Origin: Podarcis bocagei
Taxonomy: Eukaryota
Direction: 5' to 3' (one strand)
DNA length: 64,000 nt
Assembly (NCBI GenBank): GCA_964188305.1
Contig: OZ076898.1
The translations under genes and the position numbers were made by a program. Position 1 is the stretch's first letter. Each line of letters begins with the position of its first letter. Below are positions 2,322 to 57,685 of this stretch, piece by piece. The notes under the pieces are model-generated. The model made no database searches. It was not told where the DNA came from and saw only the letters and a list, made by a program, of their open reading frames with translations.

Positions 2322-2879
2322 GATGGATCAAGGCTGCAAAGGAGAAAAAGGGAGGGACACAAGAGAAAACCATAATAAGTGACATAAATATCCAGAGTCT
2401 TATTGATTTATTATTTCCCACAGTACTAGACTAGGAGAAATTCTAACCACTATCTAACCCAAGGGTAGCCAACACAGTGCCCTCCAAAGGTTGTAAACTG
2501 TGACTCCAATCATTCCCACCCATTAGCGAAGCTGGCTGGGGCTGAAGGCAGGTGAGGTCCAACAGACTGCTGGAGGCCACCACACTGATCTAATACAACA
2601 CTTATGAGGTAGCAGCAACCCCCAGAGAGCCACACACAGTTGCTAGACACCCATCAACACAAGATCCAGATCCACTGTACCCCTCAGTTCAAATGTGTCC
2701 TTTCCTTAGCCCCCTCTCTAAAAACATCTCTCCCTTTCCACAAATACAAGTGCCCAATTGGAACCCCCTTCAATTTAAGAGACCTAGAGTTAGCTCTTCA
2801 GTTTCCAACTCATCCACCTTTTGCCTTATAGAGATTTTTTAAAAATGAAATCACAATGAAATGCTTATAATTAATGTTA

Positions 2880-2938
2880 ACAAAGTATACATTCTCAAAC
2901 ACAGGATACAAAGTATACATTCTCAAACACAGGATACA
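2880..2938. repeat. 28-bp direct tandem duplication
   Basis: ACAAAGTATACATTCTCAAACACAGGAT occurs twice in a row. Confidence 0.9.
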
Positions 2939-3399
2939 GACAGAAGAGGCAGTGTAGGTATAGCAATAAAAAGTGCCAGAAGGGTCCTCAATGGAAGAAA
3001 TATAAGTGTTCCATGACTATGCAGAACACAAATGAAAAACAAGATACTGCCCAAACAGCAAAAGATCCAACTAGAAGGAAGAGCCATAATGTATTCCCAA
3101 CCGATAAGAGTATGGAAGAGAGTATTATTTTTGTTATTTCTACCGTATTGTTGTTGTTGTTGTTATTAGCGCAATCCTCACCGCGTTTGTGTAGGAGGAA
3201 GTCCTATTGACTTCCATGGTCCTAGGTAAACGGGGTTAGGTTTGCAGCAATACTGTAGCGTCTCTCTCTCTCTGCCCGCCCCCAAACCTTACACTTCTCT
3301 TTACCCCTTAGGAAACCAAAGGCCAGGGCTCATTTTTTGTTGCTCCCCAGTTAACCTCTCCCTCCCTCCTTTCCCTCCTCACCTTCTTTTTCTTTCTTC

Positions 3400-9208: not shown

Positions 9209-9214
9209 TTTATT
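9209..9214 (-). terminator. NDUFA3 polyadenylation signal AATAAA
   Basis: TTTATT on the + strand, about 110 nt downstream of the NDUFA3 stop. Confidence 0.65.
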
Positions 9215-9321
9215 ATATCCTGAAAATGTTACACATGTACACAAAAGAGCAGAGAGCAGTGCAGGCCTGGGTTGCCCCTTCAGTGTTGGTTCTCTAGGCC
9301 TGTTCTTCACAAGGGCCCATC

Positions 9322-12300: not shown

Positions 12301-15300
12301 AGAATAACAGAACAAGAGATAGAGGCTGCCATTCAGAATATGCAACTGGGCAAGTCCCCAGGACCAGATGGATTGACTTCAAGATACTACAAATCGCTGA
12401 AGGAATGGCTGATTCAACCACTGAAAGAAGTCTGCAATGAGATCCTTGAGGGAAAAAAGACACCTGAATCGTGGAAAGAAGCATATATTTCACTCATACC
12501 AAAGACAGAGACTGAAAAGACTCAACTGAAGAACTACCGCCCAATATCACTACTTAATGTGGATTACAAAATCTTTGCAGACATTTTGGCAAAAAGATTT
12601 AAAAGAGTGTTGATGGAGAAGATTCATGGGGACCAAGCAGGCTTTCTCCCTAAAAGACACCTAGCAGACAATGTAAGGAATGTGATAGATATTTTGGAAA
12701 AGCTAGAGGTGAATATAAACACTAAAGCAGTATTGATCTTTGTGGACGCGGAGAAAGCCTTTGACAATATTTCTTGGAGCTTCATGATAAAGAATCTCCA
12801 TGGGATGGGGGTAGGTCAAGGTTTTGAGAATGGTATGGCCGCAATATACTCTGAACAAAAAGCTAAATTGATTGTAAATAATGTAGTGACGGAGGAACTT
12901 AAGATAGAAAAAGGAACACGACAGGGGTGTCCAATTTCCCCATTACTTTTTATCACAGTTCTGGAGGTGTTGCTGAATATGATAAGGGAAGACCAGCAGG
13001 TTAAGGGAGTGCAGGTCGGAGCTAAACATTACAAGCTAAGAGCGTTTGCAGATGACCTAGTATTGACTTTGCAAGAGCCAAACACTAGTACGAAAAAGGT
13101 TTTAGAAATAATACAACAGTTTGGCCAGGTAGCTGGATTTAAGCTGAATAAACAAAAAACCAAAGTCTTAGGAAAAAACTTAACAGAGGCAGAAAAGGAG
13201 AAGTTTCAAGAGGAGACAGGGTTGACACTGGTTAAGAAGGTGAAATATCTAGGGGTTTATTTGACATCTAAAAATGTGAATTTGTATAAAGACAACTATG
13301 AAAAATGCTGGTCGGAAATTAAAAAAGATCTAGAAATATGGTCAAATCTGAAATTGTCAATGTTAGGCCGAATTGCTGTGATCAAAATGAATGTATTGCC
13401 TAGAATGTTATTTTTGTTCCAGACCTTGCAGATCCTGGATAAGATGGAATGTTTTAAGAGGTGGCAGAAAGATATCTCGAAATTTGTCTGGCAGGGCAAA
13501 AAGCCCAGAATTAAATTTAAAATATTGACAGATGCTAAAGAAAGAGGGGGTTTTGCCCTGCCGGACTTGAAATTGTACTATGAGGCAGCAGCATTTTGCT
13601 GGCTGAAAGAATGGATGCTCCTCGAAAATACAGACATCTTAGATCTGGAAGGTTTTAACAATGCTTTTGGTTGGCATGCATATCTATGGTATGACAAAGT
13701 TAATAGTGTCTTTAAGAATCACATTGTTAGAAAAGCACTGTTTAATGTTTGGAGAAGATATAAAGATCTGTTGGAAAACAAAACCCCTAGATGGGTCTCA
13801 CCAGTGGAGGCCAAGGCAGTGAAGAAACTCAATATGGAGGTCGGATGGCCGAAGTATTGGGAAATTTTGGAACAGGATGGAGATAAGTTGAAATTGCAAA
13901 GTTATGAGAAACTGAAGCATAAGGTACAAAATTGGTTTCAATACCATCAAATAGTGGAATTTTTCAAACAGGACAGGAAAATTGGCTTCCAGATGGAAAA
14001 ATCAAAACTAGAAACTGAATTGTTAGAACCTAGTACTAAGAATTTATCTAGAATGTATAACTTGTTGCTGAAATGGAATACACAGGAGGAAACAGTCAAA
14101 TCAGCCATGATTAAGTGGGCACAGGATGTTGGTCATAACATCATGTCAGATGACTGGGAATGGTTATGGAACACCGGTATCAAATTTACGGCATGTAATG
14201 CCTTAAAGGAAAACATTATGAAAATGGTATACAGGTGGTACATGACCCCAGTCAAGCTGGCAAAAATTTATCATCTGCCCGATAACAAATGTTGGAAATG
14301 CAAAGAGACTGAAGGTACCTTCTACCACCTTTGGTGGACATGCCCGAAGATAAAGGCTTTCTGGGAAATGATCTATAATGAAATGAAAAAGGTACTTAAA
14401 TGTACCTTTCCTAAAAAACCAGAGGCCTTTCTCTTGGGCATTGTCGGCCAATTGGTGTCAAAGAAGGATAGAGCTTTTTTCATGTACGCTACAACAGCAG
14501 CAAGAATACTCATCGCAAAGCATTGGAAGACACAAGATCTACCCACTCTGGAAGAATGGCAGATGAAAGTGATGGACTATATGACATTGGCTGAGATGAC
14601 AGGCAGAATCCGTGACCAAGGAAAAGAGACAGCGGAAGAAGAATGGAGAAAATTCAAAAGTTACCTTAAGGACTATTATAAACTCAATGAATGTTAGAGT
14701 GTTTTGGTTCTTAGGAACAAAGGGATACAGTGACATAAGGTTAGAATATAGAGATGACTAAGATGACTGAGGTTGGAAAGTAACAACTGGGAGTTGCTAT
14801 AAAATTATAGACATTGGGATGCAGAAAGGGGGGGTATGGGGAAGTCCCAGAAAAGAGGTTTATGAAAATATGTTATGAATTTATACGTGTATGTTTGTTT
14901 TCTTAAGTGTTTGTCTGTTTTTTTAAAATTTGTAAAACCAATAAAAATCTTTTTTTTTTTAAAAAAAGCTCCATTTAAAACTATGCCCACAAAAGTTCAG
15001 GCATCTACTTTTAAAGTAATACATAGATGACACTGGGTTCCAGTTAAATTAAAAAGAATCAACCCAACATCTCTCCAGACTGCTAGAGAGAGTCTGGGAA
15101 AAGGGGAGGAAGTTAGCATCTATGGTGGGAATGCTACTATGTGAAGGAATTTTTAGTTGCTGTTTTTGAAAAAAATATTAAAAAATCACTAAGCAACAAA
15201 TTTTAGCCCTTAGCGCTTAATGACATCATCCACAAAGGCCCTCATTTGCTACACCAAGAACTTATAACCCTACTGCTAGAAATTGTGTGTCATTGGAGGG

Positions 15301-17161
15301 CCACAGGTTCCCTGTCCCTAGCCTACACAAAGGATTTCTTCCAGTTTCCTGGTACAGTATGCAGTCCCAAAAACATCCCCACTGCACTCTCTTTGATCTG
15401 GCTGCACCTTTCTGAAAGTCTGCTTGATATCTCCAATACCTGTAAGCAATCGCTGTGAATTAGTCCACCCATGGTATAAATTCGGTATGTTTCTGGAAAA
15501 GTACAATTTGACAGTGATGCCACTGAAGTATGGATTGTATGCTGCAAATTGTGTAAGGCCAGAAATTGGGGGCTAGGTCAATAACATACCAAGGATGTGG
15601 TCTGAAGACCCATAGTGCAGCACACTTTCTAAAGCTAAGCAGGACTGGCCCTAGTCAGTGTCTGGATGCAACAAGCTCTGGGACCCCATACACAGCACCC
15701 ACGAGCAAACTGCAAAAATGTATTAAGAAAGTGGATTCCTGGGCTGCAGGGAAAAGTAATGCAAACTCACCCATAAAACCAATGCCGAAAGAGAGAACGA
15801 CAACTGGATCCTTTCCCCATGCATTTTTCAGAAATGGGATAATTTCTGTGGGATAATGAAGTATGCACACTTATTAGAACTGTTTTGAATACTTGCTTCT
15901 CTGACAATGTTTGGAGGCCTAATAAGTTAGAACAGGGGAAGGCTATCAGAGTATTTGGGAGGATAGGAATTTTTCGCATCTAATATTTGCTTGCCCCTGC
16001 AGCTTACCAACATGGCAGGACCAGCATCTCCTTTTAAAAAACAGTGTCTTCTTGCTAGTGCCAAAGTAGGGAGTTGGCTTGTGCAGGCAGATCTACAAAG
16101 AACAGACTTTGGGCATTTTTTACTCATAATTTAAGAGGGTTGGGAACCAGGAGTTGAACGAGGCACTAATTAGTGAGCAGATCTGTCATTCAGCGCCTCA
16201 CTTTTCCCATCTGAAAAATTGAAACAACAGTGGCGTACACTTAAGACTGTAATAATAGAGGCTCTGTTCCAGGTACCCCAACTTTTCTAAGGTGGTGACC
16301 AGAGTTGGGGCCTTTTCTATGTAGGCACTGCATCTTTGGAACAACTAGATACTTGCTTGGTGCCTACACGCGAGATGAACACTTTTATTTCCCCGGAGCT
16401 ATTCTTGCTCCTGCTTCCAAGGTTTGCTCTTGGTTTTTCTGATCATTTATAATAGTTAGACACATTATTAATGGGAAAGCTGAGACATATTTTTTTTAAG
16501 TAAGTAAAAATAATGGATGCACAGTGGAACCTTAGGAAAATCTATTCAGAAGTAAGTCCCACCAAGTTCAATGAGGCTTAACCCCTGGTAAGTGTGAAAG
16601 GGGTTGCCACCACACTTGGCTCACAACATAGCTGAGAGAACAGGTTTTGTAACGTGTCTTGTGCTCAGGACTGAGTGGGCACCCACAGGTCGCTTTTCCT
16701 TCATTAGGGGTTTAAAAGCAGAGGGAAGGTGGCTATCAGAAATGTTTCTGTAGCGGATTTTCAGTATCTGCAATGGGTTGAGCTAGATGCCTCTTGTGGT
16801 CCCTTCCAACACTATGGTCGTGGTAGACTGAAAATACAGAGTACTCGTGTACCACCGGGCAACCCTCCCCCGTGCACACAGTTTGCGCGTGCCCTAAAGA
16901 CTCCGCCACGTTCCTTCTCCACCGACCCACTTAAGAAGGTCATCCTCATAACAATTTGAACGTCCTTGTTTATCTTTACAACCCGCCCAAAAACGGATCC
17001 CCACTTAACACTCATTGCCATAACCCTGGCTCCCTCTAGCAAAGGGGGAAACCCCTCCACGAACCCCGCGCCACTCAAAAGACACGGACCCGCCAGCCGA
17101 ATAAGTAGGGAGAAAAGGAAAAAGAGACACAGTTGGGGCACTTACTGCTCAGCGCCGCCAT
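9322..17161 (-). CDS. NDUFA3: NADH dehydrogenase (ubiquinone) 1 alpha subcomplex subunit 3, 86 aa
   Basis: Exons 17161-17146, 15845-15771, 10287-10210 and 9413-9322 give [86 protein letters not shown]. Canonical splice sites; 75/78-nt internal exons as in mammals. Confidence 0.97.
10918..11403. mobile_element. Young GC/CpG-rich hAT (Charlie-like) MITE
   Basis: Perfect 15-bp TIRs CAGTGTTTCCCAACC / GGTTGGGAAACACTG and perfect 8-bp TSD TACTAGAT (10910-10917, 11404-11411). Confidence 0.92.
11552..11790. mobile_element. Penelope-like element terminal fragment in inverted-repeat form
   Basis: About 90-bp inverted arms (~11550-11640 and 11663-11753), 13-bp flanking duplication CTAGCATTTATAA (11539-11551, 11791-11803), and a hammerhead core typical of Penelope pLTRs. 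Confidence 0.75.
11603..11640 (-). ncRNA. Minimal type I hammerhead ribozyme motif (Penelope-associated)
   Basis: Minus strand reads GTAT-CTGAAGA-A-GTGTGCATGCACAC-GAAA-GC-TC-ATAC: helix I GTAT/ATAC, CUGANGA and GAAA core, palindromic helix II, minimal palindromic helix III, UC cleavage site. A second copy on + (11663-11700) has a C>T change in helix II. Confidence 0.65.
11881..14697 (+). CDS. L1 ORF2 reverse transcriptase remnant, 938 aa (start codon supplied by flanking DNA)
   Basis: ORF track plus RT motifs. The first ~15 codons lie outside or within the 5' TSD, so this is not a native ORF2 start; expression unproven. Confidence 0.6.
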   Translation: MRRTNALWGKAPFKTKLRVKPKSQEILREIKLYQSQYMELMNLEIEWKIKQMKQKTFESANKCGKLLAWQLKKRQKLNTVTSLEVDGKNISKPNEIRNCFLSYFKKLYTQGPQNEEDIDKFLDKYGLQKISHQNKMDLNQRITEQEIEAAIQNMQLGKSPGPDGLTSRYYKSLKEWLIQPLKEVCNEILEGKKTPESWKEAYISLIPKTETEKTQLKNYRPISLLNVDYKIFADILAKRFKRVLMEKIHGDQAGFLPKRHLADNVRNVIDILEKLEVNINTKAVLIFVDAEKAFDNISWSFMIKNLHGMGVGQGFENGMAAIYSEQKAKLIVNNVVTEELKIEKGTRQGCPISPLLFITVLEVLLNMIREDQQVKGVQVGAKHYKLRAFADDLVLTLQEPNTSTKKVLEIIQQFGQVAGFKLNKQKTKVLGKNLTEAEKEKFQEETGLTLVKKVKYLGVYLTSKNVNLYKDNYEKCWSEIKKDLEIWSNLKLSMLGRIAVIKMNVLPRMLFLFQTLQILDKMECFKRWQKDISKFVWQGKKPRIKFKILTDAKERGGFALPDLKLYYEAAAFCWLKEWMLLENTDILDLEGFNNAFGWHAYLWYDKVNSVFKNHIVRKALFNVWRRYKDLLENKTPRWVSPVEAKAVKKLNMEVGWPKYWEILEQDGDKLKLQSYEKLKHKVQNWFQYHQIVEFFKQDRKIGFQMEKSKLETELLEPSTKNLSRMYNLLLKWNTQEETVKSAMIKWAQDVGHNIMSDDWEWLWNTGIKFTACNALKENIMKMVYRWYMTPVKLAKIYHLPDNKCWKCKETEGTFYHLWWTCPKIKAFWEMIYNEMKKVLKCTFPKKPEAFLLGIVGQLVSKKDRAFFMYATTAARILIAKHWKTQDLPTLEEWQMKVMDYMTLAEMTGRIRDQGKETAEEEWRKFKSYLKDYYKLNEC
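11927..14964 (+). mobile_element. Recent 5'-truncated L1 LINE (RT domain, C-terminal CCHC, 3'UTR, polyA signal)
   Basis: Stop-free ORF2 to 14697 with [44 protein letters not shown] and CWKC-x8-H-x4-C. No endonuclease domain or ORF1. AATAAA at 14939; 19-bp TSD AAAGCTCCATTTAAAACTA at 11908-11926 and 14965-14983. Confidence 0.95.
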
Positions 17162-17215
17162 CTTGAAAGGAAAGCGGAGGAGGCGCAACGCATTGTGGGA
17201 ATTGTAGTTTTATAG

Positions 17216-17283
<68 letters not shown>

Positions 17284-17720
17284 GCCCTGCATTTCCAATG
17301 TGATTTTGCACCCTTTAATAATACTTATTATTGTTATTATTATTATCGCTACTTTGTTTCTTTCAAACTGTTATAACCTGTTTCTCTTCGACAAGACTGG
17401 ACGTTTGCAATACTGTACAGGATAATGCACGCCGGCTTTTTGTCGTTAATGGATTTCTTACATCTCCGGACGTTTTCATGCAGGTGTTTGCTTGGGGTTG
17501 TAATATGAATGGAGAACACGAGCGGCGTGCAATGTTACAATAGTTCAAACCCTCGGCTCCCCCGCCCCGCGTTTCTTTGCTGCAGTGCGTTCACACGTGC
17601 ACATGAATAACGCCAGACGGCCAATCACGTCATCCTGAAGGTGCTTTGCTAGGGAGAAGAAGGCATAGGGGATTTCTTTTCACTTGGTGCACGTTTGCCC
17701 TTTAGTGGCTGGCTGTGAAT
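17150..17720. promoter_or_regulatory. NDUFA3 CpG-rich promoter
   Basis: YY1 motif GCCGCCATCTT over the ATG (17154-17164), ZNF143/THAP11-type motif ACTACAATTCCCACAATGC on - (17190-17208), E-box CACGTG near 17594, CCAAT plus CACGTCA near 17620. Confidence 0.75.
17218..17279. repeat. (CT)n microsatellite, about 31 units
   Basis: Direct reading. Confidence 0.98.
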
Positions 17721-18031
17721 CCAGGTGGCTAGAAATGCATACACACATCCCAAAAATCCTGGGAACTGTGGTATGTTAGGGGTGCTGGGAAATGTAGCTT
17801 TGTGAGGGGTAAACTACAGGCCCCCAGATTCTTTTGCAGGGGGTGGGAGATGTGCTTTAAATGTACGGTGTGTCAGCTGCAGAGAAACCCTGCTGAAGTT
17901 AATAAACTTAAGTTAATCACATTCATTGGTTTCAATAGGCCTGTTCTTGTGTTGGCTTAGATACAACCCAATGGGCATTTGACTGATGGCAGGTGGGGGG
18001 GGGGAGGCAAGTAGCGGAGTCAGATGCTATA

Positions 18032-18257
18032 CAGTGATACCTCAGGTTAAGTACTTAATTCGTTCCGGATGTCCATTCTTAACCTGAAACTGTTCTTAAC
18101 CTGAGGTACCACTTTAGCTAATGGGGCCTCCTGCTGCTGCTGTGCTGCCGGAGCATGATTTCTGTTCTCATCCTGAAGCAAAGTTCTTAACCCGAGGTAC
18201 TATTTCTGGGTCAGTGGAGTCTGTAACCTGAAGTGTATGTAACCCGAGGTACCACTA
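18032..18257. mobile_element. Tc1/mariner (Tigger-like) MITE
   Basis: TIRs CAGTGATACCTCAGGTTA / TAACCCGAGGTACCACTA, TA flanks; same family as 24320-24561. Confidence 0.85.
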
Positions 18258-19930
18258 TACTTTCTTTGAATGGCCTGAAAAATGTGAAGTTGCATGACAT
18301 TATCATTGCTAATGTATCGGGAATTATTTGATGACTTAAAAGAAAAAAGTTGCAACAGGAAACTCTGTCCCAGAGCATGTGCAGAGTATATTTCCCTGAC
18401 CACTACACAATCCGCTTTACAGCCCTGGGGACAGGTTGAGCTGTGGGTGTCACATCCTTTTTAAAAATTTGTCTCTGAACTTCTCTGCAATTAACCATTC
18501 GGGGACAATTTCCTTCCAAATAGCGATATTTCCACCTCCTCTGTCAATGCCAAAGACACTGGCAGCCCTACTAACACACTGGCAGCTGCTTCCTTTTGAG
18601 TCACCTCAGGGACTTTCTGGGTCTAAGATAAGGAAGCTTTCGACCTTGTTTGACCGCAAAACTCCAGTTTTTGACCTACTGTCACGTTCAGTTCCCCTTT
18701 GAAATGACCAGTCTGTTGGATAAAAATATTCTATTCTACAGGGGTATATTCTAGAGGCAAACAAAACGGGGGCGGGTGGGGGATCTTTTTCAGCTAGTAG
18801 GTCACATTCCCTTCAGAACAAACTTCTGTTCTGAGGGCCACATGCTAGTGGTGGATAGGGCCCGAGACCAAAGGCGGCGGGGAGCAACCATCTTAAAGGA
18901 AGCTAGTTTCTATACGCACACATGCCTCCCTTTCTATTACTCATCCATTATGAGATTTGCCAGTTCAGGCAAAACCACTTGGGAAGGGAGACAGATACTG
19001 AGAGAGTCTACATTTTGCATCTTGAGAGCTCTGCTGCTGTTTGCCAGATGTGTTGTACAGCTGGCTCAAGTAACCAAGAGGCCCTTCCTTATTATCACTT
19101 TATTTATTCCCAGGTTGAAGGCCTGGTCTGGCGCCCAGCCATTAGGCAAACTCCAAGTTTGATATGTGACATGCTTCATAACACGTTTGATATTGTTACA
19201 TGCTGCCATAGTCTCCACCAATGGCTGCATGGGGTTTGTGTTTCCTTCAGAAAATTGGGCACAAGGGAGGCTATAGTGTTTTATTATTATATATGGATTA
19301 TACACACACACACACACACACAACCTGAAACTGTCGCTGGAGGAGCTCACAGCTACAAAACGGCAACAAAACATTGGCTGGCAGAAGTTGGGAACGGATC
19401 CCAAATTCTGGGGTTTGTAGTTAATGAAGTTACCCCTGGTCTGAATATCAATTACTCAGTTGTGGGGGCGCTATAAACTGTGGGGTTTGAAATGACTATA
19501 AAACATTGACACAGGTTTGGAGTGACTTGGACAATGTTGGATTTCTGGGTGTTAACTACAAACCCCCATTTGATATTTGTTGAGCGAAACAAAATACATG
19601 GATCGTTCTACAAAATGATTACAAAACCCTACAAAAGTTTGGAGAGGATCCCAAATGTTGGGGTTCATAGTTAATGATGCTCTCTCTGCCTCCTGGTTAC
19701 ATTACTTCCCCCCTGCTTTGTTTACAGAGGGAGGACCCCATTTATTTGCATTCTAACACCCAAGTTTGCACGACTTCATTAGCACTTGTCAAATTAGCTA
19801 GGATTACACTGTCCAATACACAACCCAGGAAGTGTGCCTACTTAACTAGCTTTTACGTGTACTAATAACACAAGCTTATCGGTGGGTCCATCACACCTCT
19901 TACTACCCCAATGCACACTTGGGTCTAGCT

Positions 19931-20165
19931 CCTTGGTTCCCAACGTGGGGCACACGCCTCACAGTGGGGCAATTTGATTTTTAGGGGGGCAGCAATTTGA
20001 GAAAGAGTTATTAACAGTTCGTGGCCTTTTAGGCTTCCTCCACATGAATAGGAGTTTACTTTTTGAATAATAAGAATTACAGTACATGTCACGGTGGGGG
20101 GCGGGGAATCAGGATTTTAGAGATGCTTAGGTGGGGCATAGCCAAAAAAAGGTTGGGAACCACTG
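19931..20165. mobile_element. hAT MITE
   Basis: TIRs CCTTGGTTCCCAAC / GTTGGGAACCACTG; near-perfect 8-bp TSD GTCTAGCT / TTCTAGCT. Confidence 0.75.
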
Positions 20166-20935
20166 TTCTAGCTATTTTCCAGTTCTAACATACCAGTTCC
20201 AATTAAATTCTAACATTTATTAAATACAAGCATTTAGCACCCACAGATCTATAATGAAATATGAAAGTCGGTGTGTGTACATAGGTAGGCATGATTTTAT
20301 TTTTAGATAGCAGTCCATACTGCATTGTGTGAGCAAAAGTTGGCAATAGTGTGCACAAAGGCAGAACAAGATATTTGTTGAAAGCAGACTGCTGCCAAGA
20401 TGTTGCCTTCAGGGATGTGCAGCTGTGCTGTATAAAGCTACCTTGAAGCAGAAGCAAGTTGGGGAGGAGGATACTGCAGCTCCAGAAAGGAGCCAGTGTA
20501 CTTTTACTGAATCTCTGGCTTCCAATTTTTTGCTGCCTCTAGGCCACACAAACCACACACTTAAAGCACTTCAAACAGTCATGGCTTCCCCCAAATAATT
20601 CTGGGTGCTAAAGTTTGTTAAGGGTGCTGACAGTAGTCCGGAGGCCCCTATTCCCTGCAGACAACTACCATTTCCAGAGTTCCCTGTGAAGAGGAATTGA
20701 CTGTTAAACCACTCTGAGAATTATACCCCTGTCTTTAGAGCAACTGAAAACATCAAACAATAAGCCATTTATTGCTGCCTTTGTCAGAAAGGGAACTGTC
20801 CTTTTCCTTTTCTCTCTCTCTACCCCAACCCAACATTATGACTGATGATGGATCATCATTTCCTGGGCATCATATTTATATACTGGGATGTCCAGACACT
20901 CGAATTCTTATTTGAAGGCTCTGCGTGTTTTAAGG

Positions 20936-23900
20936 ATGCCTGTTACTCTCTCCTTCTTACTGCTTACGATCTGTGAGTATAGTTGAGCTCAGTGGGGTGG
21001 GAAGTATCTATTCAGCTGGTAAAATCAGAGGGGCATTGAATTCTGGGACTGCAGCAGCATCAGCAAGGAGAAGAGAAGTGGCTAGGGCTATCTGAAGATG
21101 TTTCTTGCTGCCTGATGAAACCCGGGTGGGTGGGTAGTTAGATGAGAGCGAGGATTTGAGTTGCATAGACACCATGCTTTAAAGCGCATTCAAAGCCCAC
21201 ATGCCTCAAAGAATCCTGGGAACTGTAGACATGGGATCTTGAATCAGCATTCCTGGGTTTTGGCAGTCGGCCCTTCTCTCTTTCAGCCCTGCCAAAGCCC
21301 TCTATCTTCTGGCTCCAGGCTCCGGATGCAGATGAGAAGCACCACCTCCGATGTACGGCTCAAGGGGCATATTTTGGCAGCTGGTTCTACCTGTACCAGG
21401 GAGGGAGCCCGGAGGCCGTGGCTGAAAAGAAAGCCTTGCCCACCCAATCCGAAGTGACCTTTGAGGTACACAACTTTGGGCCCAGGGACCAATTCCGCTG
21501 CAGCTATGAGATCTGGGAGGCAGGGAAGCCCATTCGCTCTCCGCTCAGCAGCCCTGCAAACATCACAGAGGGTAAGTGTTGGGCCGTACAACTCAATGAC
21601 CATGCTAGGAAGGTCATGCGCAATAATAGGCCCAAAGTGGTGCAGGAGGGTTGGTGTGAGAACCAGTGGGACTGGGACTGGTCCAGGAATAGGACTTTAT
21701 GGTAGTGAAGGACTTAGGGCAATGATGCTGGCCTTTAGCAAGGATGAGGAACCTGTGGCTCTCCCAACATTGTTGGATTCCATCAGTCAGGATCTTGAGC
21801 TTGATGGAGATGACACCCTATGAGGAAGGCTGATGAGAAGGGGTTGATTTTTTTTTGAACACTTGTTATGATTATTTAGGCTTGCCATATGTCAGGAAAA
21901 TTCTTTTTTTCGAGAGTAAAAATAGCATCAGGGGGATTTTACCGAATCTGCAATGTCAGGGAAAACCTGTATGTATGGCAACGTGAAGGAAAAAGCAACA
22001 GAAACAGCTCCAAAAGCTGAAAATCACTATTTTGGGGGGAGGTTTCCCTAAAAAAGCTCAACAACAAGGGTTTGTTCCCAAAAAGCTGAACAATTTTGGG
22101 TCTTCCTTAAAAAAAGGTCAACTTACTTTGTGAGTGTCAGGAATATAGCAACCCTAGGATTGCTTATACTATACCTTATACTTACATGATCAAGCTGCTA
22201 TGAAATGTGTGCACTTTTAACTTTTAGCATTTGCAAATCATTTGTACACTTTACAGTATAGCTCTATTTGTTACTATGTATTTTATAACATATGTTCAAG
22301 CTTCTGGTCACTATGGAAACATAAACATTTAAGACTCTATGAAATTTTCACATACATTGCTAGTTTTTGTACCATTTGGTATGGTCCTGCCAAGCAGCAG
22401 CTGCTGGTTATATTATTGTTGACATGCAATTGCACTGGAATGTGCATTATATTTGTAATTAATTGATATCTTTAATGATTGATAGTTCATTTTATGATGG
22501 CTTTAAAATGTTGCAATGTTCATATAATCACACAGAGTTATTTGCTGGATTGTCATACTATATTTTGAAGTGATTTAGTATTTGAGCTATTCTAAACATA
22601 TACTGTACTGATTTGCATTTTTGTTGTTCTCCTGCAAGCTGCTTTGAGCACATTTATAATATAAATCTAAATAATAAACAGACAAGCACACAAAGGCAGT
22701 GTGTTTGAACCCCTTCTCTTTACAAAGGTTTGTCGCTACTGTTTTTAATGTTGTAATTTTGCAAACACACTATATACCTTTAAAGCACATTCAAAGCACG
22801 TTCTTAACCTCCAAGAATTCTGGGCACCTTAGTTTACTGCTTACAGAGTTACAATTCCCAGCACCCTTAACAAACTACAGTGCCCAGACTTCTCTGAGGG
22901 TGTGTGTGTTTCAAACATGCTTTAAAGGTATAGTGTGTATAGTGGTACCTTGGTTCTCAAACTTAATCTGTTCTGGAAGTCTGTTCCAAAACCAAAGTGT
23001 TCCAAAACCAAGGCGCACTTTCCCATAGAAAATAATGCAAAACGGATTAATCCGTTCCAGACTTTTAAAACCAACCAATTTAACATGAATTTTACTATCT
23101 AACAAGACCATTGATCCATAAAATGGAAGCAATAATCAGTGCACTGCACTATAAGATAAATATGACAGTATTGTAGATGATAAAAATTAAAATTATCCCC
23201 CCCCCTTACCTGCACTGATGATAGTCATTGTTTGGATGGGGGGGGCGGGCTTTTATCCATTTCCACAGTCACACAATCAATCAATCAATCAGTAGCTGAA
23301 CTGGGTTCCACAAAGTCACAAAAACAACTTAACTGAAAAAGCATCAAAAACAAAAACGCAAAATAAACAGCAAAAACAAAAGCACCAAATTCAATCCATT
23401 CTGGAAGTCTGCCTGACTTTTGAAATGTTCAAAAACAAGGTGCAGCTTCTGATTGGTGCAGGCGCCCTGGAAACAATAGCCAACAACCGCATCGGATGTT
23501 CGGCTTCCAAAAAACATTTGTTAACCGGAACACTTACTTCCGGGTTTTTGGCGTTTGGGAACCAAGGTACCACTGTATGCCACTTGTGTATTTTGATATG
23601 AATTGGTTTTTGCTGTTTCATGGGGAATGTTTTAAAAATGATATTGATGTTTTTTCCGGCCACCTTGTATTACTATGCAAAAAGAAGCAACCTACAGTAT
23701 TATTATTTTTATTAACAGCAGAGAATAAGGTCTGAGGCTCAGTAAACAGCTTTTCTCTCCCCCTCACAGACCATTACCCCAAGCCATCCATCTCTGCGAG
23801 TCCCAGTACTGAGGTCCTTGCAGGGCAGGACTGGACTGTCTGTTGTCAGGCTCCATTGCTAGGGGTCAACTTTGTCCTCTACCAGGCCAGGGACTTTCGG

Positions 23901-30654: not shown

Positions 30655-31080
30655 CAACAGTAAAGGACTGGACGAGGTAACTTTTAGGTGGATTTGTAGC
30701 TGGTTGACTGACCAAACCCAAATAGTGCCCACTAATGGTTCCTAGTTATCCTGCAAAAAAAAAGGGACTAGTGAGGTGCCACAGGGTTCTATCCTGAGCC
30801 CATTGTTGTTCAGCCTCTTTATAAATGACTTTGATGAGCATCCCCTCAATTCCTTCATCCAATTTCCAGGTGACACCAAACCGGGAGGGGTAGCCAATGC
30901 CACTCAACATGGAATCAGGATTCAATATGACCTTAACAGATTGGAGAACTGGGCCAAAACAAACAAAATGAATTTCATTAGGGGCAAATGTAAGCTTCTA
31001 CACTTAGGCAGGAAAAACCAGCTGCACCAATATAAGATGTGGGACACCTGACTTGCCGGCAGTAGATGTGAAAAGGATCC
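30655..31080 (+). mobile_element. CR1 LINE RT fragment
   Basis: VPQGSILSPLLFSLFINDFD...FPGDTKPGG...IQYDLNRLENWAKTNKMNF...KCKLLHLGRKN, a degenerate form of the classic CR1 RT motifs. Confidence 0.88.
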
Positions 31081-31563
31081 TCTTTTTCCCCTGTAACAGC
31101 AGAGGGCTCAGCTGCTTCCTATCAAAGTAGCTATTGCTTGTTATGCAGGTAAAGTGCCCCCTCTATTGCAATGGGCTGAGGAGGTGAGGCTGTGGTTTTA
31201 AATAAGTTGTGATTAGGTCTGAGTATGGCCCTTTTTCAAGCTACACCCTTTTGGGTTAATTGACTCTTGCCACACCCATACAAATGCAGGTTTATTAAAG
31301 GGGCATCAGTAGTGAAGCGCATCCCCCCCCCCCCGCTTTAATTGTTCGTGGTTTTCTTCAGCTTGAAAATATTTTACTTTTCTTTGCTTTTAAGAAATAG
31401 ATTTGTCTGGCTTGGAGGAGAATGTGGGTGGGCTTTGTGCTCCCCCCACACCCGGTACCCTGACTTGCAAGGGTAGCTGAATTTTCTGGAAAAGTGTTGA
31501 GGGTTAGGCAAGCTTGGGGAGGGAGGTGAGAGGATGTTATGATCTGAGGCCCAGATTAGGACC

Positions 31564-34500
31564 ATGGAAAAACCGCTCCTGGAAGTTGTGGTGAGATCCA
31601 CGGAAGAAGACCTTTGTCAGAAACGCCCAGCGTCTGAGGAAGAACAACCTATTTATAAAAGACTACGGATGGATTCGCCAGTTCATCCAGTCGAGTCGGA
31701 GGCCTCTCTACCACCAGAGAAGAGTATGTGGAGCTATTCTAATTGTGGGGAAACTGTTTTTTTCCTTTAAATTTGATTTAAAGATGGGGGATGCAGCAGG
31801 AGTGTGATATGGGTGTTGCAAAGAAGGATTGTCTCCATGGAGGTGGTAACTCCTATTGATTAACGTGTATTCAAGATTACTTAACGTTAGGCCCCATCTG
31901 CGCTAAACATTTAAAACACTTTAAATAGGTTTCCAGCAATGACTCTTTGAGAACTGTAGTTTGTTAAGCGTGATGAGAGTTGTAAGGAGACACCCCCTTC
32001 TCCTTCTGAGCTACAATTCCCAGAGCTCCTTATAAAGGGGGATTGAATGCTTATTTATTATTTACTTTGTACATTTATTATCCCGCCTGTTAAACCACTT
32101 TGGCTTTGTTAAGCCACTCTGGGTTTAAAGCAACCTGCTACTGTGCAAATGGGGCCTTCGATTAGTTATTCATAACAGCAGCCTCTGGCTTAGGGGTCAA
32201 CATACAAAGGCCTTGGAGCCAAATCCGGCCCCTGAGCTGGGACACCTGCAGCTTCTCCGGAGGTAAGAGAAGTTGTGGGGAGATGGGTTTGCGTGGCGAT
32301 GTGTCTGTCGCTGATTTTGCTAGGTGAGGGCCCCAGTCCGCATTTGCTCCTCACGTAAAACTGGTTGTGCCCTTTTCTCATGCTATGTCCCCTTTTCTCA
32401 CGCTTCGGGTGGCTTGGATTAATCTAAAGAAGCGTGAGCGGAAGGTGAAAATGCATTTGTGCTCCTCCGGGAACAATTGTGCCAGAGTTAATGGAAGGGT
32501 ACTTAGGCTGTAGTGCCATAATGTATGGGGGGAAGCAGGGTTGCATTTTGGTATAAAGGAAACAGTGCATGAGGAAAACATAGGCCGTACTCTTTGTTTC
32601 CAGGTCCAGTTCAAGGGTGCTCACATGAATGTTGAAAGCCCTAAATGACTTAGGCCCCAACGACTGCTTCTTTCCCTACAACCCCCCCCCCCCAGGGGTG
32701 TTAAGATCAGCAGATGGGGCCCTCTTGGTAGTTCCACCTCCCTCAGAAGTTTGGGGTGGCTTTCAACATGGAAAAATAATAAAATCTTATTACTGAATAA
32801 TAATACTTTAATTAGTTTGGGGTGGTGGCTCAGGGAAGGGCAATCTCTGTGGCAGCCCCAAGTTGTTGAACTTCCTCCCCACAGAGGTGTGTCTGGCTTC
32901 TTCACAATTCAGCTCCTGGCAAATGCTGCAGACACACTTTTTTACCCTGGGCTTTGGCTCATGAGATGTGTGTTCCCAGGGTCCACCCTATTCCTGTAAT
33001 TTTAATCTGCTTTAACTGTTGTTTATTTTGAATTTTAAATACTGTAGTTGTCATTTGCCCTGGGATCTGCTGGTGAAGGGCGGGGAATAAATTTAGTAAC
33101 AATCATGATGTTTAATAACGAGCAAGATGTAGAAGGCCATAAAAAGGGTCTCGCTTGAGACTAAGCCTGTGTGCAGTTGGAGGAACTCATGGATTTGGTG
33201 TTGGTTTTCCTCATACAGCGGTTTTCTGCTAAGGAAGAAATAGGCCTTCTCTGACAGGAATAGGCTTTCTGCTAGTGGAAAGACACCTTTAGGATCCAAC
33301 TCAATGCATACATAATGTGAAAATAGGGATTCCAGACATTCTTGACTTTTTAATGTTTTGTATCCTAATGATTTGTAGCTTCTACTCCAGCCTGCCCCAC
33401 AGCGCCCCCTCCAGCCTGCTCCACAGCTCCGCCTTTGTCCACACACCAGGGCAAGAAACCTTCACGCAGGGCTGCTTATCATCCCTTTGATTTCACCTCA
33501 GACGAGCTGGACCCTGCCTATGAGTGGCCAAGGGAATCTTCTTCTGCAAGGCAAAGTAAGATGCATGGAGGAGCTGACTAGTAATGTTTGTATGCTCTTT
33601 GGAAGGGACCCTGGTATGTGAGCATGGAAAAATAGGAGGTCTAAAACGCGTGGGTTTTATTCTAGAATGGGAGAGATGGTGAAGGTAAGAAAAGGAGACT
33701 GGTCTGTTTGAGAAGGTGTGGCCTACTGCTACACATTCAAGGGAATGAAGTGGGGGAATGGACTGCATCAGATTACAGGAGGGTGGGGTTGGCTGTCCAC
33801 TTTTGCATACGTATCCTTTAAAAAACACCCACCCATCCCAGGAAATAGAACACATAGACTCTAGCTGTGTGCTACCTCAGCCCTTTCCTACTATGCTGAA
33901 TTTATCATCATGGAGAAAACATAGGGAAACTTTCAAAAATGTGATGATTTACTTGCAGTTTGAAGAGGTACACTTTGTCCTCCCTGTTCAGCACACTCGT
34001 TTATACCTCATTCTGCGTAGAGCAGGCTGGCCATACCTTCCCCACCTTCAGCAGGAAGGAAATCATCCAACTCTCTGAAGAATACCCTCATCCTAATGAA
34101 GCCTGTTTCAGTTTAATATCTGATTGGAGGTTCTGCAAATACTTCCTTAACTGGAGAGAGGCCTTCAGCAGTTGCAATGGGAACTGAAGCCTAATGAGGC
34201 TAAGGGAAAAGAAATATAATAAAAGTCAGGAGTCCTGTGACTTTGAGTTTGTAGTATAGTCGAGAAATAATCAAGAGGAATTTGGCATGAAGAGCACAAA
34301 AACTTGTGTGCAAGTAAAGCACTGGTTCCACACTTAGCACCCACTGACAAATGGGCTAGCTGTTCCAGGTAACTGAGATCCATTCCAAACAACACTAAAA
34401 AGTAGGGCTGTGGGGCCACTCTGTCCGAATTCTAGATCCTGAACCAAATTGGGCTGATTGAGGCAGCCCCTGGTTAGGTCCACCCAAAGTGATCTAGAGC

Positions 34501-35002
34501 TGTCCAAAGGGGTGGTAATCGGGTGGCAAGGAGCAGGATGGAGGAGAAGAAAGAAATGCAGGCAGCCTGTCTGTGTCTCTTCCCCTACCATTGGACCACC
34601 TATAAAATAGGGTTTAAAACCACAATTAAACAATATGCTAGGGCCCCAATTCGGGGCCCAGTTCCAGGTCAAGTCTACCCCAGGACATATCTCGAACACT
34701 GGATCAGGGGGAATGCCCAGTCCTACTTAAAAGCCTTTTCATCATCATCAAGGCCTCTTTGTATCTTTCAGGTAGTGTGGATGTGATCCCTCTCCTCCGA
34801 AGCACTCTGGGCCAGTTTCCTTTAGGTTTGCGTCTGGATAAGCTGGAGGCCCTGGTATGGAAGGAGCACAAGGTCAAGCTGTGGAAACTGTGCTTGGAGC
34901 GAGGCTACAGTGACAGCCTGAAGTTCTTGGAGGTGTTACCTGGGATCAGGCTCAAACACTCCGGCAAAGGGACTTTCCGGTGCCTTGTGCTGTTGGACAC
35001 AG
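31564..35002 (+). CDS. Uncharacterised multi-exon protein with bipartite NLS and LOTUS/OST-HTH-like domain (3' end unresolved)
   Basis: Kozak ACCATGG at 31564. Phase-1 GT-AG exons 31564-31723, 32179-32262, 33379-33555 and 34772-35002 splice into 217 open codons. The last exon reads VIPLLRSTLGQFPLGLRLDKLEALVWKEHKVKLWKLCLERGYSDSLKFLEVLPGIRL, which fits the LOTUS pattern by eye. Candidate downstream acceptors at about 36035, 36735, 37340 and 38323. Confidence 0.6.
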
Positions 35003-37126
35003 GTGAGTGTTTCTCTCCTCTAGCCTGACCTTGTGTTCTCTCAGGAGAGCTACGGCACCCACAGCCTGGCAAGCTTTGGCCTTAATTTTATGCTTTTCTA
35101 GGTCATTGAAGGTTTGTATCTGATCTCCAAGAAGCAACTTGCAAATAATCTACAGGCCTAATTTTATTCAGAGGTTGTCAGTGCGGCACCTGCTCGCCCC
35201 ATGGTGCCTGCCATAGCATCATACGGTTCCTGCAAAATGTCTCAGTAAATATCATCTCACAAAATGTCTCGGTAAATATCACCTCAAAAATCCATAATGC
35301 ATGAGAGACTGATTGCCGTACCTGCTCATTTCCTGTTTGGGTTGGCTTTGTTGCTCTCTTACTTCGAACACCCCCCCCCTTAAATGTGCCCATATTTTTC
35401 GGGATGCCAGGATTGGACACCCAACTTCCCAACCATTCTGAGCAGAGGACAAATTCAGTGAGCTTTTCACTGTGAGTGTATATGGCAGTGGCTGATACAC
35501 ATTTTTTGTGAGGCATGCCCACTGCTTTTTGTGATCCGAGCTGATTTTATGCTCCTTTAGATGTGGCATCCCTTTCATGTTATACCACGCCGTGACAGCA
35601 CTTCCTCATAATTCCACATGTGCCCCCTGGCCCTGAAAGCTCGGTGACTCCTGTTAGTCTGCCTGATTTAAAGGGATCTGGGTGGGAAGCAGTGGGTGGA
35701 GCACATGCTCTAAACGAAGAGGGTCCTGTGATCAGTTCCCCAATATTTCTAGCACAAAGGAATCAGATAGCAGCTGATGCAAAGGCCTCTGCCTGAGATG
35801 TGGAAAGGCTACTGCAGGCAGTGTAGACAATAAAGGGCCTGTAGTCTGACCTGCTATAAGGAGGCCTTGTTTTGTTTTGTTTTGTTTTAACCCTCCTTTT
35901 GAACAGCAGGAAAGGGCAAAATAAACAAACCCCAATATTTAAAAGCCCTCCCAGTCCCCAAGATTAAGAGTACTCTGTACCACGCCTCACTCCACTTGCT
36001 TTTCAAAAGTCTTGCTTTTATAACCTGCCTTTAGTACAGAATGGAGCTCAGAGTGGTTGTGTGGGGTTTCAAAGTGGTCTCCCATCCAGGCACTCCCGAG
36101 ACCAAGATCTGCTTAGTTCCAGAAAAGCTGCTGTTGATGCTGTCTGGAGGTGGCAATATCTTTCTGCTCAGCTTTTGTACACCTCCAGTCCACTTCTCTC
36201 TGCTGGTTTCTCCACTCTGCTTTTCCCATTTTGCTTTAGTCTTCAGTAAGTAACTCTCAGTCCCAGTGGATTTGCACCGCCCATTTTGGGAAACCCCTGA
36301 GGCTTAACTGTACGTGGGCAGGAATGCATTTTATTCCACTGGGTATTATTGTTGCAAAGGCTGGCTTAAAAAAAAATGAGCTACTGGCTGTGTACATGCT
36401 ATATACATTTAAAGCGCTTTCGAAGCACATTCTTTCCCTCAAATAATTCTGGGCACTGTAGTTTGCTAAGGGTTGCTGGGAATTGTAACTCAGAGGGGCA
36501 AACTAGAGTGTGCAGAATTATTTGAGGGAAAGAATGTGTGCCGAATGTCCTTTAAACGTTTAGTGTGTGCATAGTTGTCAGGAGGCAAGGCTTCACTGTC
36601 CCCCAGGAAGGAAGCTGCCTTAAACAGAACCAGACCTTTGGTCCACCCATCTCAGCATTACCTGCACTGACTAATAGTTGCTGTCCATGTTTCAGTCAGG
36701 GGACATTCCCAGCCCTACTTGGTGTTGACTTCTAGAACTTCCACCTCACGGTTGGCCTTGTTTGCCGCATGGCTCTCGGATGAGCTGGCAATGTTTTGAG
36801 AGTTACAGTTGCACAGAAGAAGGGGACAGAATTCTGGTTATTCTTCTTGATGTAGTTAAGCCAGCACCAGAGGAAGAAACTGTGTATATACATATATACA
36901 CAAACATGAATTATTATTTTTTTTAATGCAAGGGGAGCATTGAAATTTGGTCCTCCCCCACCTGCAGTCTGAACTGGTGTAGTCCAGAAAATTATACCAT
37001 CTCATTTTGTGTTGAATGGCTGTTCAGGTTTAAAGGATATAGTGCATCCTCAAAGAGGAATGGTTGCAACACAGCACCACAGCACACATTTTACATGCAG
37101 AAGGTCTCAGGTAGACAATCCTGGTC

Positions 37127-37214
37127 TAAAGGTAAAGGGACCCCTGACCATTAGGTCCAGTCGCGGACGACTCTGTGGTTGCGGCGCTCATCTCGCTTTA
37201 CTGGCCGGGGAACC
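37127..37214 (-). mobile_element. Sauria SINE 3' fragment
   Basis: Matches the 3' end and (ACCTTT)n tail of the full copies at 52271 and 62024. Confidence 0.85.
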
Positions 37215-38268
37215 GGTATAAAAAGTAGCTTCCTACGCAGGTGGATCACTAGTCTGAAGGCAGCTTCCTATCTTTGGATTTCTGTTTTATGGCCCTTGGA
37301 TATCTTGAGTGTGTTGTCTTCTGCCCCTCCCTTTTATAGCTGGTCCTTATCGTTTGTCCTATGGGCCTGCAAACACAGCAAGCAAGGAACTGCGTGGCAC
37401 TGCAAGAACTGTAACGAGTTCTGCTTTGCCTTTGCAAGGATCCTGATGCTGTGAAAGAAACTGGATTCCAGCATCAGGTGGACTTCGTTGAACGGTGCTG
37501 GTTTCATTATAACAAGCTTCTCCCCCCCCAAAAAAAAAGAATGCATTGGGTGCCCTGTATTATTACTGCCTTGATCCGTCAGTCTTGGGAGTTGTTGGTC
37601 TTGAAAAGAGGTGCCTTTAGGGATCAAACCTCTAGAGGGAGCAACTTCCATATTTTTGTGTGTAACCCCCCCCCCCCCATTTCTTTGGCATCTTAATAAC
37701 CTAGCACTTTTATGCCTGGTGTTAATAGCTAATGGAGGAAAGTATTTAAAGGAGCTTTGGAAATGGATTCCCAGCACTGGAGCACACCAAACATTTATTT
37801 AACAGTAAGGGAAAGGAAGACAACTTGAATTGTGGAAGCCTGTGTAATTTGTGCTACTTTGTAAGGAACACTTAGTATGCAGCCGGTAGGCATCTTACCT
37901 CGGGGCTGTTGGCTTTATCAAAAGGGTGGGGGAAGATAGTGTCTCTGATTAGTGATGCAATCGTTGGTACTAGCCAATAGATTTGTGCAGCCACAGTCTG
38001 AACTGCACTAGATACTCGAATTGGTGCAGTAATGGGATGGGGTAGACGTGTTGCATGATAAAATATCCTGCATCTTAAGTGCTGGAGAACTGCTTTCCCT
38101 TTGATGCAGACATTTCTTTGAAAGAAGGCTTCTGAAATCCTAGGACTGGGCCACACTGCCGCAAAAAATGTGGACTTGTACCTGCCTGTCTCCCCAATAA
38201 TGGGAGGGGCATCCAGATGAGACCCTTCCCACCCCAGTGTTGTCTTAGAGGGGAGACAGGCAGGAAGG

Positions 38269-38269
<1 letters not shown>

Positions 38270-38305
<36 letters not shown>
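38270..38305. repeat. (GT)n microsatellite
   Basis: Direct reading. Confidence 0.97.
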
Positions 38306-38309
<4 letters not shown>

Positions 38310-39901
38310 GTTCCTTGCAAAGTCCAAAACAGCCAGGATCGAAAAACTCCGCATTTAAAGGGGGAAGGATGCAGGACAGCATCATGTGGGAGGCTCTCCA
38401 TTAGTAGAGAGACGGGTGCAAGTCCAGTGTAAACAAATCCTGGGATTCTTATTGGCGTCTTGATTCCCCGACAAATATGAAGCTGGGGGTTCTACCTGCA
38501 GGATACAAGATCCAGGCCCTCAAAGGACTCACCTGCCTTTAAAAGGGGCACAAGAGCGAATATTTTGCTGCCTCAAGCTGCTCTTCCACTATCAGCATAG
38601 ACGAAGCAACTGGAGAATCTGCACCTTGCTGGAATTTTCCCTTCTCCACAACAACTGAAGAGATGAGAGCTCTCTTGAATCTGGATCCTAGCAACCATAA
38701 TTCACTTCAATCCATGCTGATAAATTGTTCTATGATGCAACAGTATGTTATTTTTTCCCTTTGTCAATGAGCCTCAGGCATCTCTTCCCACTTGCTTTAG
38801 GACACTGCAGTGGCAGAACACTGGAGCCTTTGAACAAATGGGTAATAGTCACAGATGGACCGGCCTTCAATAAATCGTCTGGGTTGTGCCTGTTCTCCCT
38901 TTTTGTAGCTTAGTTTGAAGCATGTATGAATCTCTTTCCAGTTCCCTTTTTTAATTTCCATTTCCTTTTTCTAGATCCAATGAGGGAGGGAAGGATTTCC
39001 TTGCCTTACTTTACTTTACAGAAGATGTCTTTTGCATGCTGTTTATCATCTGCCCTGGGTCAAAACCTCTGGATGTGTATAAACCTTGGAACAGTCACTC
39101 TTCCTTTCTAAACTCTTCCCTTTACCAAACCAGTGGGGTTCAGTGCAATTAGTCTAACCTCTTAAACGTCAAAACATCTTCTGCAGGCTGCTTTGATCCA
39201 GTGCCAAAATACTGTATTTTGATCATGGAGAGAGATTTTTTGTAATACAACCTAGTGTCTATGGTTCAACTTATTATTTTATTGATTTTAGCCGCCCTGA
39301 TCCCGGCTTCGGCTGGGGAGGGCGGGATATAAATAAAATTTATTATTATTATTAAGGAAAAAAACCACGCAGCATCAACTGTTCTGTATGAATGTCTTCT
39401 ATTTTTACAAACATTGATTTGAGGGCTGGAGAAATGTAATTCCAGATTTCTGCTAGTATAATCGTTTATATATTCTTTTAGTGTCTCAGTAGCTGCACCC
39501 AGCATCCCTTGAGCAGCTCATCAGTGTAAGTTTACAAACCTCCTGCTTGTTCCCAGTTCATCCTACACAAACTTGAATTGCTCTAGTGTAGTTGCATTGA
39601 AGGGAAAGTGTTTGGCTTCCCTCATTGGCAGATGAAACTTAAAATCTCACTAAAACATGCTTGTCACAGTTTAGGATCTCATTCTGCAGTTCACTGGGGT
39701 CGGTGTTCATCAGATAGAAAAGTCTCCCAGTATATTTTATTAAAAGCTAGAAACCATAGTTTTATAGCCATCCCTGACTATTCTGTCCTGTCACATGAAT
39801 AATCTCTTTATAAACTGTTGTTCCTCTAGGAAATATTCCAGTCTGTTCCAGATTATCCTCCCAGTATTTTTTCCCCCTGCCTTGAGATTTTCAGAGAGGT
39901 T

Positions 39902-57685
<17,784 letters not shown>

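Follow-up and report, generated by a model that had tools for sequence, protein, structure and literature searches.

An unnamed gene was studied in a stretch of 64,000 nucleotides (nt) of the Podarcis bocagei genome (contig OZ076898.1 of assembly GCA_964188305.1; hereafter, the window), where its coding sequence (CDS) starts at position 31564 of the plus strand. It was concluded with high confidence that this is a genuine lizard protein-coding gene, transcribed and conserved, that carries a minimal LOTUS domain. The gene consists of three conserved coding exons followed by one of several interchangeable short terminal exons (Table 1). Taken together with the adaptor mechanism considered below for its product, it was judged reasonably likely to be the best explanation of the data.

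Gene structure and transcripts

Transcripts were examined over positions 31400-37400 in four of five small runs from two related organisms (A and B) and two studies; the label "RNA?" of these runs was a guess. The joints 31723>33379 (GT..AG) and 33555>34772 were found in spliced contigs of all four runs, the latter being reported by the aligner as 33557>34775 owing to one substituted base. Exons were covered at a depth of 81-156 (organism A) or 1214-1285 (organism B), and introns at approximately 0-5. Because spliced contigs joined them in every run, the borders of exons 31564-31723, 33379-33555 and 34772-35002 were regarded as confirmed. In organism B, an alternative acceptor was used at 33391, 12 nt downstream of 33379, as also occurs in Lacerta agilis.

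The original prediction, made from the sequence alone, had proposed four exons spliced into an uninterrupted frame of 217 codons. All four stretches do translate in phase 1, and three of them were borne out by the spliced contigs; the exception was 32179-32262 (exon 2), which was bypassed in the main contigs (31723>33379 in X1-X3 and 31720>33391 in X4). Its acceptor at 32179 was not seen in use in the contigs of the four runs, and the sole use of its donor at 32262 was in a minor contig of organism B (depth 22) that was unspliced from 31813. The peptide encoded by exon 2 was absent from all 11 RefSeq isoforms of Podarcis raffonei, P. muralis and L. agilis. Being bypassed in every main contig and absent from these isoforms, exon 2 was rejected as a part of the main product.

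The predicted Kozak start codon was upheld. ATG 31564, flanked by A at -3 and G at +4, is the earliest start following an in-frame TGA located eight codons upstream. The 5' untranslated region (5'UTR) in the RNA contigs reached at least 287 nt upstream of 31400. The product of exon 1 comprises a conserved N-terminus, ME.P.LEVV, shared at its start by orthologues of at least 12 squamates and of turtles, and a basic motif with the KR-x10-KRLR pattern that had been described. The conserved CDS amounts to 160 + 177 + 231 + 71 nt, i.e., 213 codons rather than 217, which matches P. muralis LOC114582295 (213 amino acids (aa), with an identical tail).

The main terminal exon of the gene lies beyond 38432, where the range given in the original prediction ended. 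Contigs of organism A were found to extend 27 nt past 35002, and these 27 nt matched the window only at 44909-44935, with one mismatch (0 matches expected by chance) and directly after an AG (X1 and X3). The tail encoded from 44909 was also found in P. muralis LOC114582295 and in P. raffonei isoform X3. Judging from the AATAAA at 45104 (+), the 3' end of the transcript would lie near 45125. In addition to the 44909 exon, there are at least four terminal exons; all of the tails are short, mutually unrelated and non-conserved, and no read support was found in the runs for those at 35561 and 37729. The conserved part of the product ends with the LOTUS exon.

Table 1. Positions of the gene's exons and motifs and of the neighboring coding regions in the window
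Feature	Position	Strand	Description
Exon 1	31400..31723	+	RNA contigs over 31401-31723, continuing past the upstream edge; donor GT 31724
Basic motif KRPASEEEQPIYKRLR (KR-x10-KRLR), resembling a nuclear localization signal	31621..31668	+	From translation
Exon 2 of the original prediction	32179..32262	+	No support for coding use in the main transcript
Second coding exon	33379..33555	+	Pro/Ser-rich linker and acidic-aromatic motif; RNA joints
Acidic-aromatic motif YHPFDFTSDELDPAYEW	33477-33527	+	Conserved in every squamate orthologue
LOTUS exon	34772..35002	+	231 nt, 76 residues, phase 1 at both ends; RNA joints
Alternative terminal exon	35561..35596	+	Tail DVASLSCYTTP; AG acceptor, phase-1 frame; tail of P. 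raffonei isoform X5
Alternative terminal exon	37340..37447	+	35-residue tail; minor joint 35002>37340 (GT..AG) in X4, organism B, depth 12
Alternative terminal exon	37729..37803	+	Tail ANGGKYLKEL...; AG 37727-37728; tail of L. agilis isoform X2
Alternative terminal exon	38502..38543	+	Tail GYKIQALKGLTCL; acceptor and frame; tails of L. agilis isoform X3 and P. raffonei isoform X4
Main terminal exon	44909..45125	+	Coding 44909-44982; 24-residue tail, then stop (44980-44982)
FAM83E exons	57131-57685, 55014-55433, 45520-46134	-	
SPACA4-like open reading frame (ORF)	50708-51085	-	UPAR_LY6, E 1.7e-6; between FAM83E exons, same strand

Several repeats were noted along the gene. The coding part of the 44909 exon looks repeat-derived. 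Its segment 44909-44975, in which the contigs of organism A break off after 27 nt, contains GGCTTCAAATCCCC, which resembles a tRNA B-box; the element bearing it is present in a single copy in the window. This segment may be an exonised tRNA-derived short interspersed element (SINE). Another repeat, at 37127-37207, lies just upstream of the 37340 exon. It is very abundant: its summed contig depth was 7,600-22,000 in each of the four runs, and its different flanking sequences numbered in the hundreds. It is probably a squamate SINE core. A reverse-transcriptase fragment was detected at 30776-31051 (+), a few hundred bases upstream of the 5'UTR (RVT_1, E 1.4e-5, below the family cut-off); a transposable element may have given rise to the promoter region. 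Within intron 1, repeat-like ORFs at 32629-32999 (+) match the N-terminus MLKAPKDLGPNDCFF... of P. raffonei isoforms X1, X3, X4 and X5. They probably mark an alternative first exon, the coding value of which is doubtful.

At the 3' end, the last coding ORF of FAM83E terminates at 45520 (-), and a minus-strand AATAAA reads TTTATT at 45029. By these signals, the terminal exon 44909-45125 (+) and the FAM83E 3' end 45029-45522 (-) appear to overlap tail to tail by approximately 100 nt.

When the proteins were compared, the copy in the window was found to differ from P. muralis, P. raffonei and L. agilis at four sites: 33450 (Gly for Cys in QCKK), 34774 (Ser for Gly, the first residue of the domain), 34958 (His for Pro in KPSGKG) and 35000 (Thr for Pro, the last residue). 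The RNA contigs also differ from the window copy at three of the four. On this comparison, the four changes are substitutions specific to the lineage of the window genome.

Identity of the domain

The LOTUS-like domain, which had originally been called by eye, was supported at the fold and family levels because LOTUS structures ranked at the top of both structure searches, Foldseek and VIA-align, and because its family is linked to OST-HTH and DUF7515. An alignment of 124 domain copies was used, with the window exon as its first row, and the copies were scanned singly against Pfam. L12, G18, L36, G44, L52 and P56 were nearly invariant among them, and the LOTUS signature was present: the first strand has G-L, Leu occupies the hydrophobic positions, and the last helix is preceded by G-Y/F and the hairpin by Pro. 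DUF7515 (PF24359) was matched by 90 of the 124 copies, and OST-HTH (PF12872) by 27 at E<=1, with a best E of 5e-5. The profile match was thus found in the homologous copies and not in the window exon taken alone. The 76-aa exon did not match PF12872, either alone or as the first row of the alignment, nor did it match DUF7515 alone; its aligned stretch in the homologous protein P0003 (residues 133-203) spans a DUF7515 match at 137-182. A phmmer search of PDB sequences with the exon gave a chance match only. With the family profile, the best match among PDB sequences was the LOTUS domain of TDRD7 (E 0.007), and hhalign against the canonical OST-HTH domains of the long relatives gave an E of 1.3e-4, in register. 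By sequence, the link to canonical LOTUS domains is weak but consistent.

An AlphaFold2 model based on the 124-copy alignment had a predicted local distance difference test score (pLDDT) of 88.9. As had been anticipated, a winged helix was obtained, with the predicted order alpha-beta-alpha-alpha-alpha-beta-beta (helix, strand, three helices, hairpin). Foldseek ranks 1-25 were all LOTUS (Oskar, TDRD7, Tejas), and TDRD5 and MARF1 followed at ranks 29-33; template modeling (TM) scores were 0.62-0.76, and the E-values reached only 0.02-0.07 because the domain is short. In VIA-align, superposition on TDRD7 gave a Z of 11.9 and a root-mean-square deviation (rmsd) of 1.4 Å over 72 of 76 residues. 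TDRD5 and Tejas each gave a Z of 11.2, Oskar 9.9 and MARF1 8.3; other winged helices followed at <= 7.3.

Two types of LOTUS domain have been described: the extended type, with a C-terminal helix (alpha5) required for Vasa binding, and the minimal type, as in MARF1, without it (Jeske et al. 2017, PMC5458760). The LOTUS exon, which holds the entire domain, ends just after the last strand, and the orthologues stop 2-13 residues past that strand (after 2 in Gekko). The tails of 2-35 residues are unrelated between isoforms and species and are predicted to be non-helical, and no helix follows the domain in a full-length model of the Lacerta protein. Because the exon ends after the last strand and neither the orthologues nor the model have a C-terminal helix, the domain, as modeled, is a minimal LOTUS and not of the extended Vasa-binding type.

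The N-terminal approximately 110 residues were predicted to be disordered (pLDDT ~50-60 in the Lacerta model). This part is rich in Pro and Ser and mildly acidic in most orthologues, and the LOTUS domain is basic, with an isoelectric point of 9.1-10.0 in squamates. The N-terminal part contains three conserved short motifs, namely ME.P.LEVV, the basic KR...KR.R and the acidic-aromatic DFTSDELDPAYEW, which takes the form W.TD.WDP.HEWPKE in turtles. The basic motif resembles a signal for nuclear import and shows the pattern of a classical bipartite nuclear localization signal (KR, a spacer of 10-12 residues and a cluster with at least three basic residues out of five); squamates and turtles alike retain its second cluster (KR.R or KKRP.R). 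In a full-length orthologue model, the acidic-aromatic motif was not confidently docked on the domain (pLDDT 50-64).

Relatives, locus and selection

A phmmer search of 1.84 billion representative proteins with the LOTUS exon yielded 56 matches; a word-index protein search with the 76-aa exon, limited by its length window, returned only two unnamed exon fragments. Short orthologues of 190-230 aa were found in Lacertidae, Iguania, Anguimorpha, snakes and geckos. The whole set of short proteins regarded as orthologues spanned 190-364 aa and came from P. raffonei, P. muralis, L. agilis, Sceloporus, Phrynosoma, Anolis, Varanus, Crotalus, Naja, Liasis, Paroedura, Gekko and Sphaerodactylus; they were labeled "uncharacterized" or "hypothetical" or were misnamed. 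The original description of the gene as unrecognized needs correction, since RefSeq/GenBank models exist (P. muralis LOC114582295, P. raffonei LOC128399859, L. agilis LOC117058256 and Anolis LOC100556011), though without a name or a domain call. A literature search on DUF7515 and six LOC identifiers found no paper.

The best-scoring matches were long unnamed proteins of 600-2000 aa with 3-9 domain copies, from turtles, lizards, alligators, caecilians, salamanders and frogs. In Pfam, these long relatives contain DUF7515 repeats, and most of those scanned, not all, have canonical OST-HTH at one end. The long top matches were not accepted as MARF1, since these unnamed proteins of reptiles and amphibians lack both NYN and RRM.

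Homologues of exons 31564-31723 and 33379-33555 were found only in the short squamate proteins and in one turtle set, whose members start with ME.PW.EVVVV, followed by KKRP.R, the acidic-aromatic motif and 2-3 LOTUS domains. In the domain tree, all squamate copies fell into one clade (support 100/99), within which geckos, snakes, iguanians and lacertids formed separate starred groups, and this clade joined the turtle short-gene copies with a support of 87/83. The turtle LOTUS exon has a length of 228-231 nt (231 nt in lizards) and phase 1 at both ends, and it recurs with the linker exon as a repeated unit, which fits the idea of a duplicable symmetric exon. The claim of a stand-alone minimal LOTUS built on one symmetric phase-1/phase-1 exon thus held for the squamate gene, and it is this exon type that has been tandemly multiplied in turtles.

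The chromosomal position was also compared. In the turtle Natator depressus (OZ223876.1), the orthologue lies tail to tail with FAM83E (SACK1 and PLDc_2), which contains a nested UPAR_LY6 gene. The same arrangement was found in the window, with FAM83E on the opposite strand and a SPACA4-like gene nested in it. The squamate gene has a turtle orthologue at the same position and has been conserved since the squamate ancestor. Lineage restriction, as originally suggested, was also supported: the named relatives are all from squamates and turtles, with the longer ones extending to crocodilians and amphibians. No bird or mammal was found among the named relatives in this protein search, in which not all matches were named and no vertebrate genome was searched.

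Another gene with LOTUS-like ORFs was observed at 2197-4083 of the N. depressus locus (L003), directly upstream of the orthologue and on the same strand. Its first ORF closely resembles the N-terminus of a Pelodiscus protein (P0068) and the aligned canonical OST-HTH domains, and the Pelodiscus annotation fuses the two adjoining LOTUS genes in one isoform. Turtles seem to possess a small LOTUS gene cluster beside FAM83E. This upstream neighbor is not present in the window, and six-frame scans of the 64 kb with the family hidden Markov model (HMM) and the canonical OST-HTH HMM revealed no second copy of either LOTUS type.

Selection was evaluated on the LOTUS exon, which was 75-86% identical between species versus 30-55% in the flanking introns, with the acceptor and phase kept. 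When the window copy was compared with those of two distant relatives, this exon gave a ratio of nonsynonymous to synonymous substitution rates (dN/dS) of 0.21-0.40.

Possible function and comparison with known LOTUS proteins

A mechanism can be proposed only tentatively. The protein would be a small adaptor, the minimal LOTUS domain of which would bind RNA or, alternatively, a protein partner; the acidic-aromatic motif would recruit a second factor, and the basic cluster would carry the protein to the nucleus. Such an RNA-binding nuclear adaptor was rated as a possibility somewhat short of even. PMC7498356 reports that LOTUS domains bind G-rich and G-quadruplex RNA. For the nuclear location, which was also part of the original prediction, the only indication in the sequence is the partly conserved basic motif. 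A broader proposal was regarded as rather doubtful: the gene and its long DUF7515 relatives would represent a further vertebrate LOTUS lineage of amphibians and non-avian reptiles, whose nuclear, single-domain squamate member would tie a specific RNA class, e.g., G-rich or transposon-derived RNA, to a germline nuclear partner through the minimal LOTUS and the acidic-aromatic motif.

Several observations weigh against the gene and mechanism as presented here. The runs are presumed to be RNA and come from unlabeled tissue. Pfam gave no match at E<=10 for any exon taken alone, the profile-profile probability in hhalign was only 53%, and the domain structure is predicted, not solved. The first KR of the basic motif, kept in most squamates, is KS in Anolis and absent in turtles. 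Among close lacertids, nonsynonymous differences outnumbered synonymous ones in a partial list (approximately 6 to 4 and 7 to 4), so the constraint, while real, was considered moderate and not strong. In one relative (L001), the last codon of the LOTUS exon is TAG. The latter two observations would be expected of a transcribed relic or non-coding RNA whose frame was kept by chance or recent origin and whose product is functionless, as would 3' exons that are numerous, short, unconserved and partly repeat-derived. However, the frame was intact in at least 12 squamate species across the deepest squamate split and in turtles, the dN/dS values given above argue against a relic, motifs outside the domain are conserved, and the L001 stop removes only the variable, dispensable tail; a relic was therefore considered very unlikely. 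It is scarcely credible that the exons belong to a larger gene, either the long multi-LOTUS paralogue (P. muralis LOC114583091) or a neighbor read through. This idea could draw on the Pelodiscus isoform joining the upstream canonical OST-HTH gene to such a LOTUS exon and on the second LOTUS gene directly upstream in turtles, but the RNA contigs begin in the 5'UTR, with an in-frame stop before the ATG, the window has no other copy of either LOTUS type, and the RefSeq models are separate genes in three lacertids.

Other roles were also weighed for the protein itself. Action on Vasa as by Oskar, TDRD5 and TDRD7 appears precluded because the C-terminal helix needed for the contact is missing. The best structural matches were indeed to TDRD7 and TDRD5 (in each, the first LOTUS domain) and to the LOTUS domain of Tejas (Z 11.2-11.9), but Vasa binding requires the alpha5 extension (PMC5458760), and the exon encoding the present domain stops directly behind the last strand and the orthologues soon stop as well, with unrelated tails and no predicted helix; a Vasa-type role was thus considered highly improbable. 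Somewhat less remote, though unlikely, is a cytoplasmic protein-protein adaptor in mRNA decay or translation control, in which the LOTUS domain would bind, e.g., CCR4-NOT and the basic cluster would be no import signal. The minimal LOTUS type is shared with MARF1, whose LOTUS had the highest sequence identity among the structural matches (23-26%), and the conserved acidic-aromatic motif resembles a docking peptide; Drosophila MARF1 is linked to CCR4-NOT in PMC6168497. However, the protein has one domain versus 6-8 copies in MARF1 and lacks NYN and RRM, and the KR.R/KKRP.R cluster has been conserved between turtles and lizards.

What is known of LOTUS proteins in vertebrates comes from three germline regulators, TDRD5, TDRD7 and MARF1. 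The locus studied here reveals a further conserved and unstudied LOTUS family in reptiles and amphibians, in the short members of which the domain is missed by Pfam. The squamate member is the simplest natural case, with one minimal LOTUS and a short disordered head with three conserved motifs, and is a convenient system for asking what a lone minimal LOTUS does; the turtle orthologues provide a clear example of domain-array growth through exon duplication. The practical gain is modest: the exon models are corrected, a set of genes listed as "uncharacterized LOC" receives a domain call, and a hypothesis is offered that can be tested.

The protein is none of the characterized three, as had been predicted: Tudor, NYN and RRM domains were found in no orthologue, the P. 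raffonei orthologue had no Pfam family, and the short orthologues had no precomputed Pfam entries. TDRD5 and TDRD7 (Tejas/Tapas) gave the best superpositions (Z 11.2-11.9, rmsd 1.4-1.8 Å), and TDRD7 was the best PDB sequence match of the family profile; however, the Podarcis protein has neither Tudor domains nor alpha5, and the Vasa contact described by Jeske et al. 2017 would not be possible in the same way. According to PMC8331183, Caenorhabditis elegans MIP-1/EGGD-1 and MIP-2 similarly combine LOTUS with disordered regions and lack enzymatic or Tudor domains. Those proteins, in contrast, each possess a pair of LOTUS domains and recruit Vasa, serving as cytoplasmic hubs of germ granules.

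With MARF1 (Limkain b1), the Podarcis protein shares a minimal LOTUS without a C-terminal helix (23-26% identity, Z 8.3) and membership in a group with tandem domain arrays, its long turtle and lizard relatives having 7-8 copies. It differs in having one domain and ~213 aa versus ~1700, in lacking the NYN nuclease and RRM, in its disordered N-terminal part with conserved motifs of its own and in its restriction to reptiles. The long DUF7515 (PF24359) proteins, with their 600-2000 aa, 3-9 copies and long Pro-rich regions, also differ from the one-copy squamate protein, whose N-terminal motifs were not found in them. To these proteins, which carry canonical OST-HTH domains as well, it is nevertheless related by direct homology, with phmmer E-values of 1e-75 to 1e-5, 30-41% identity and the same exon type.

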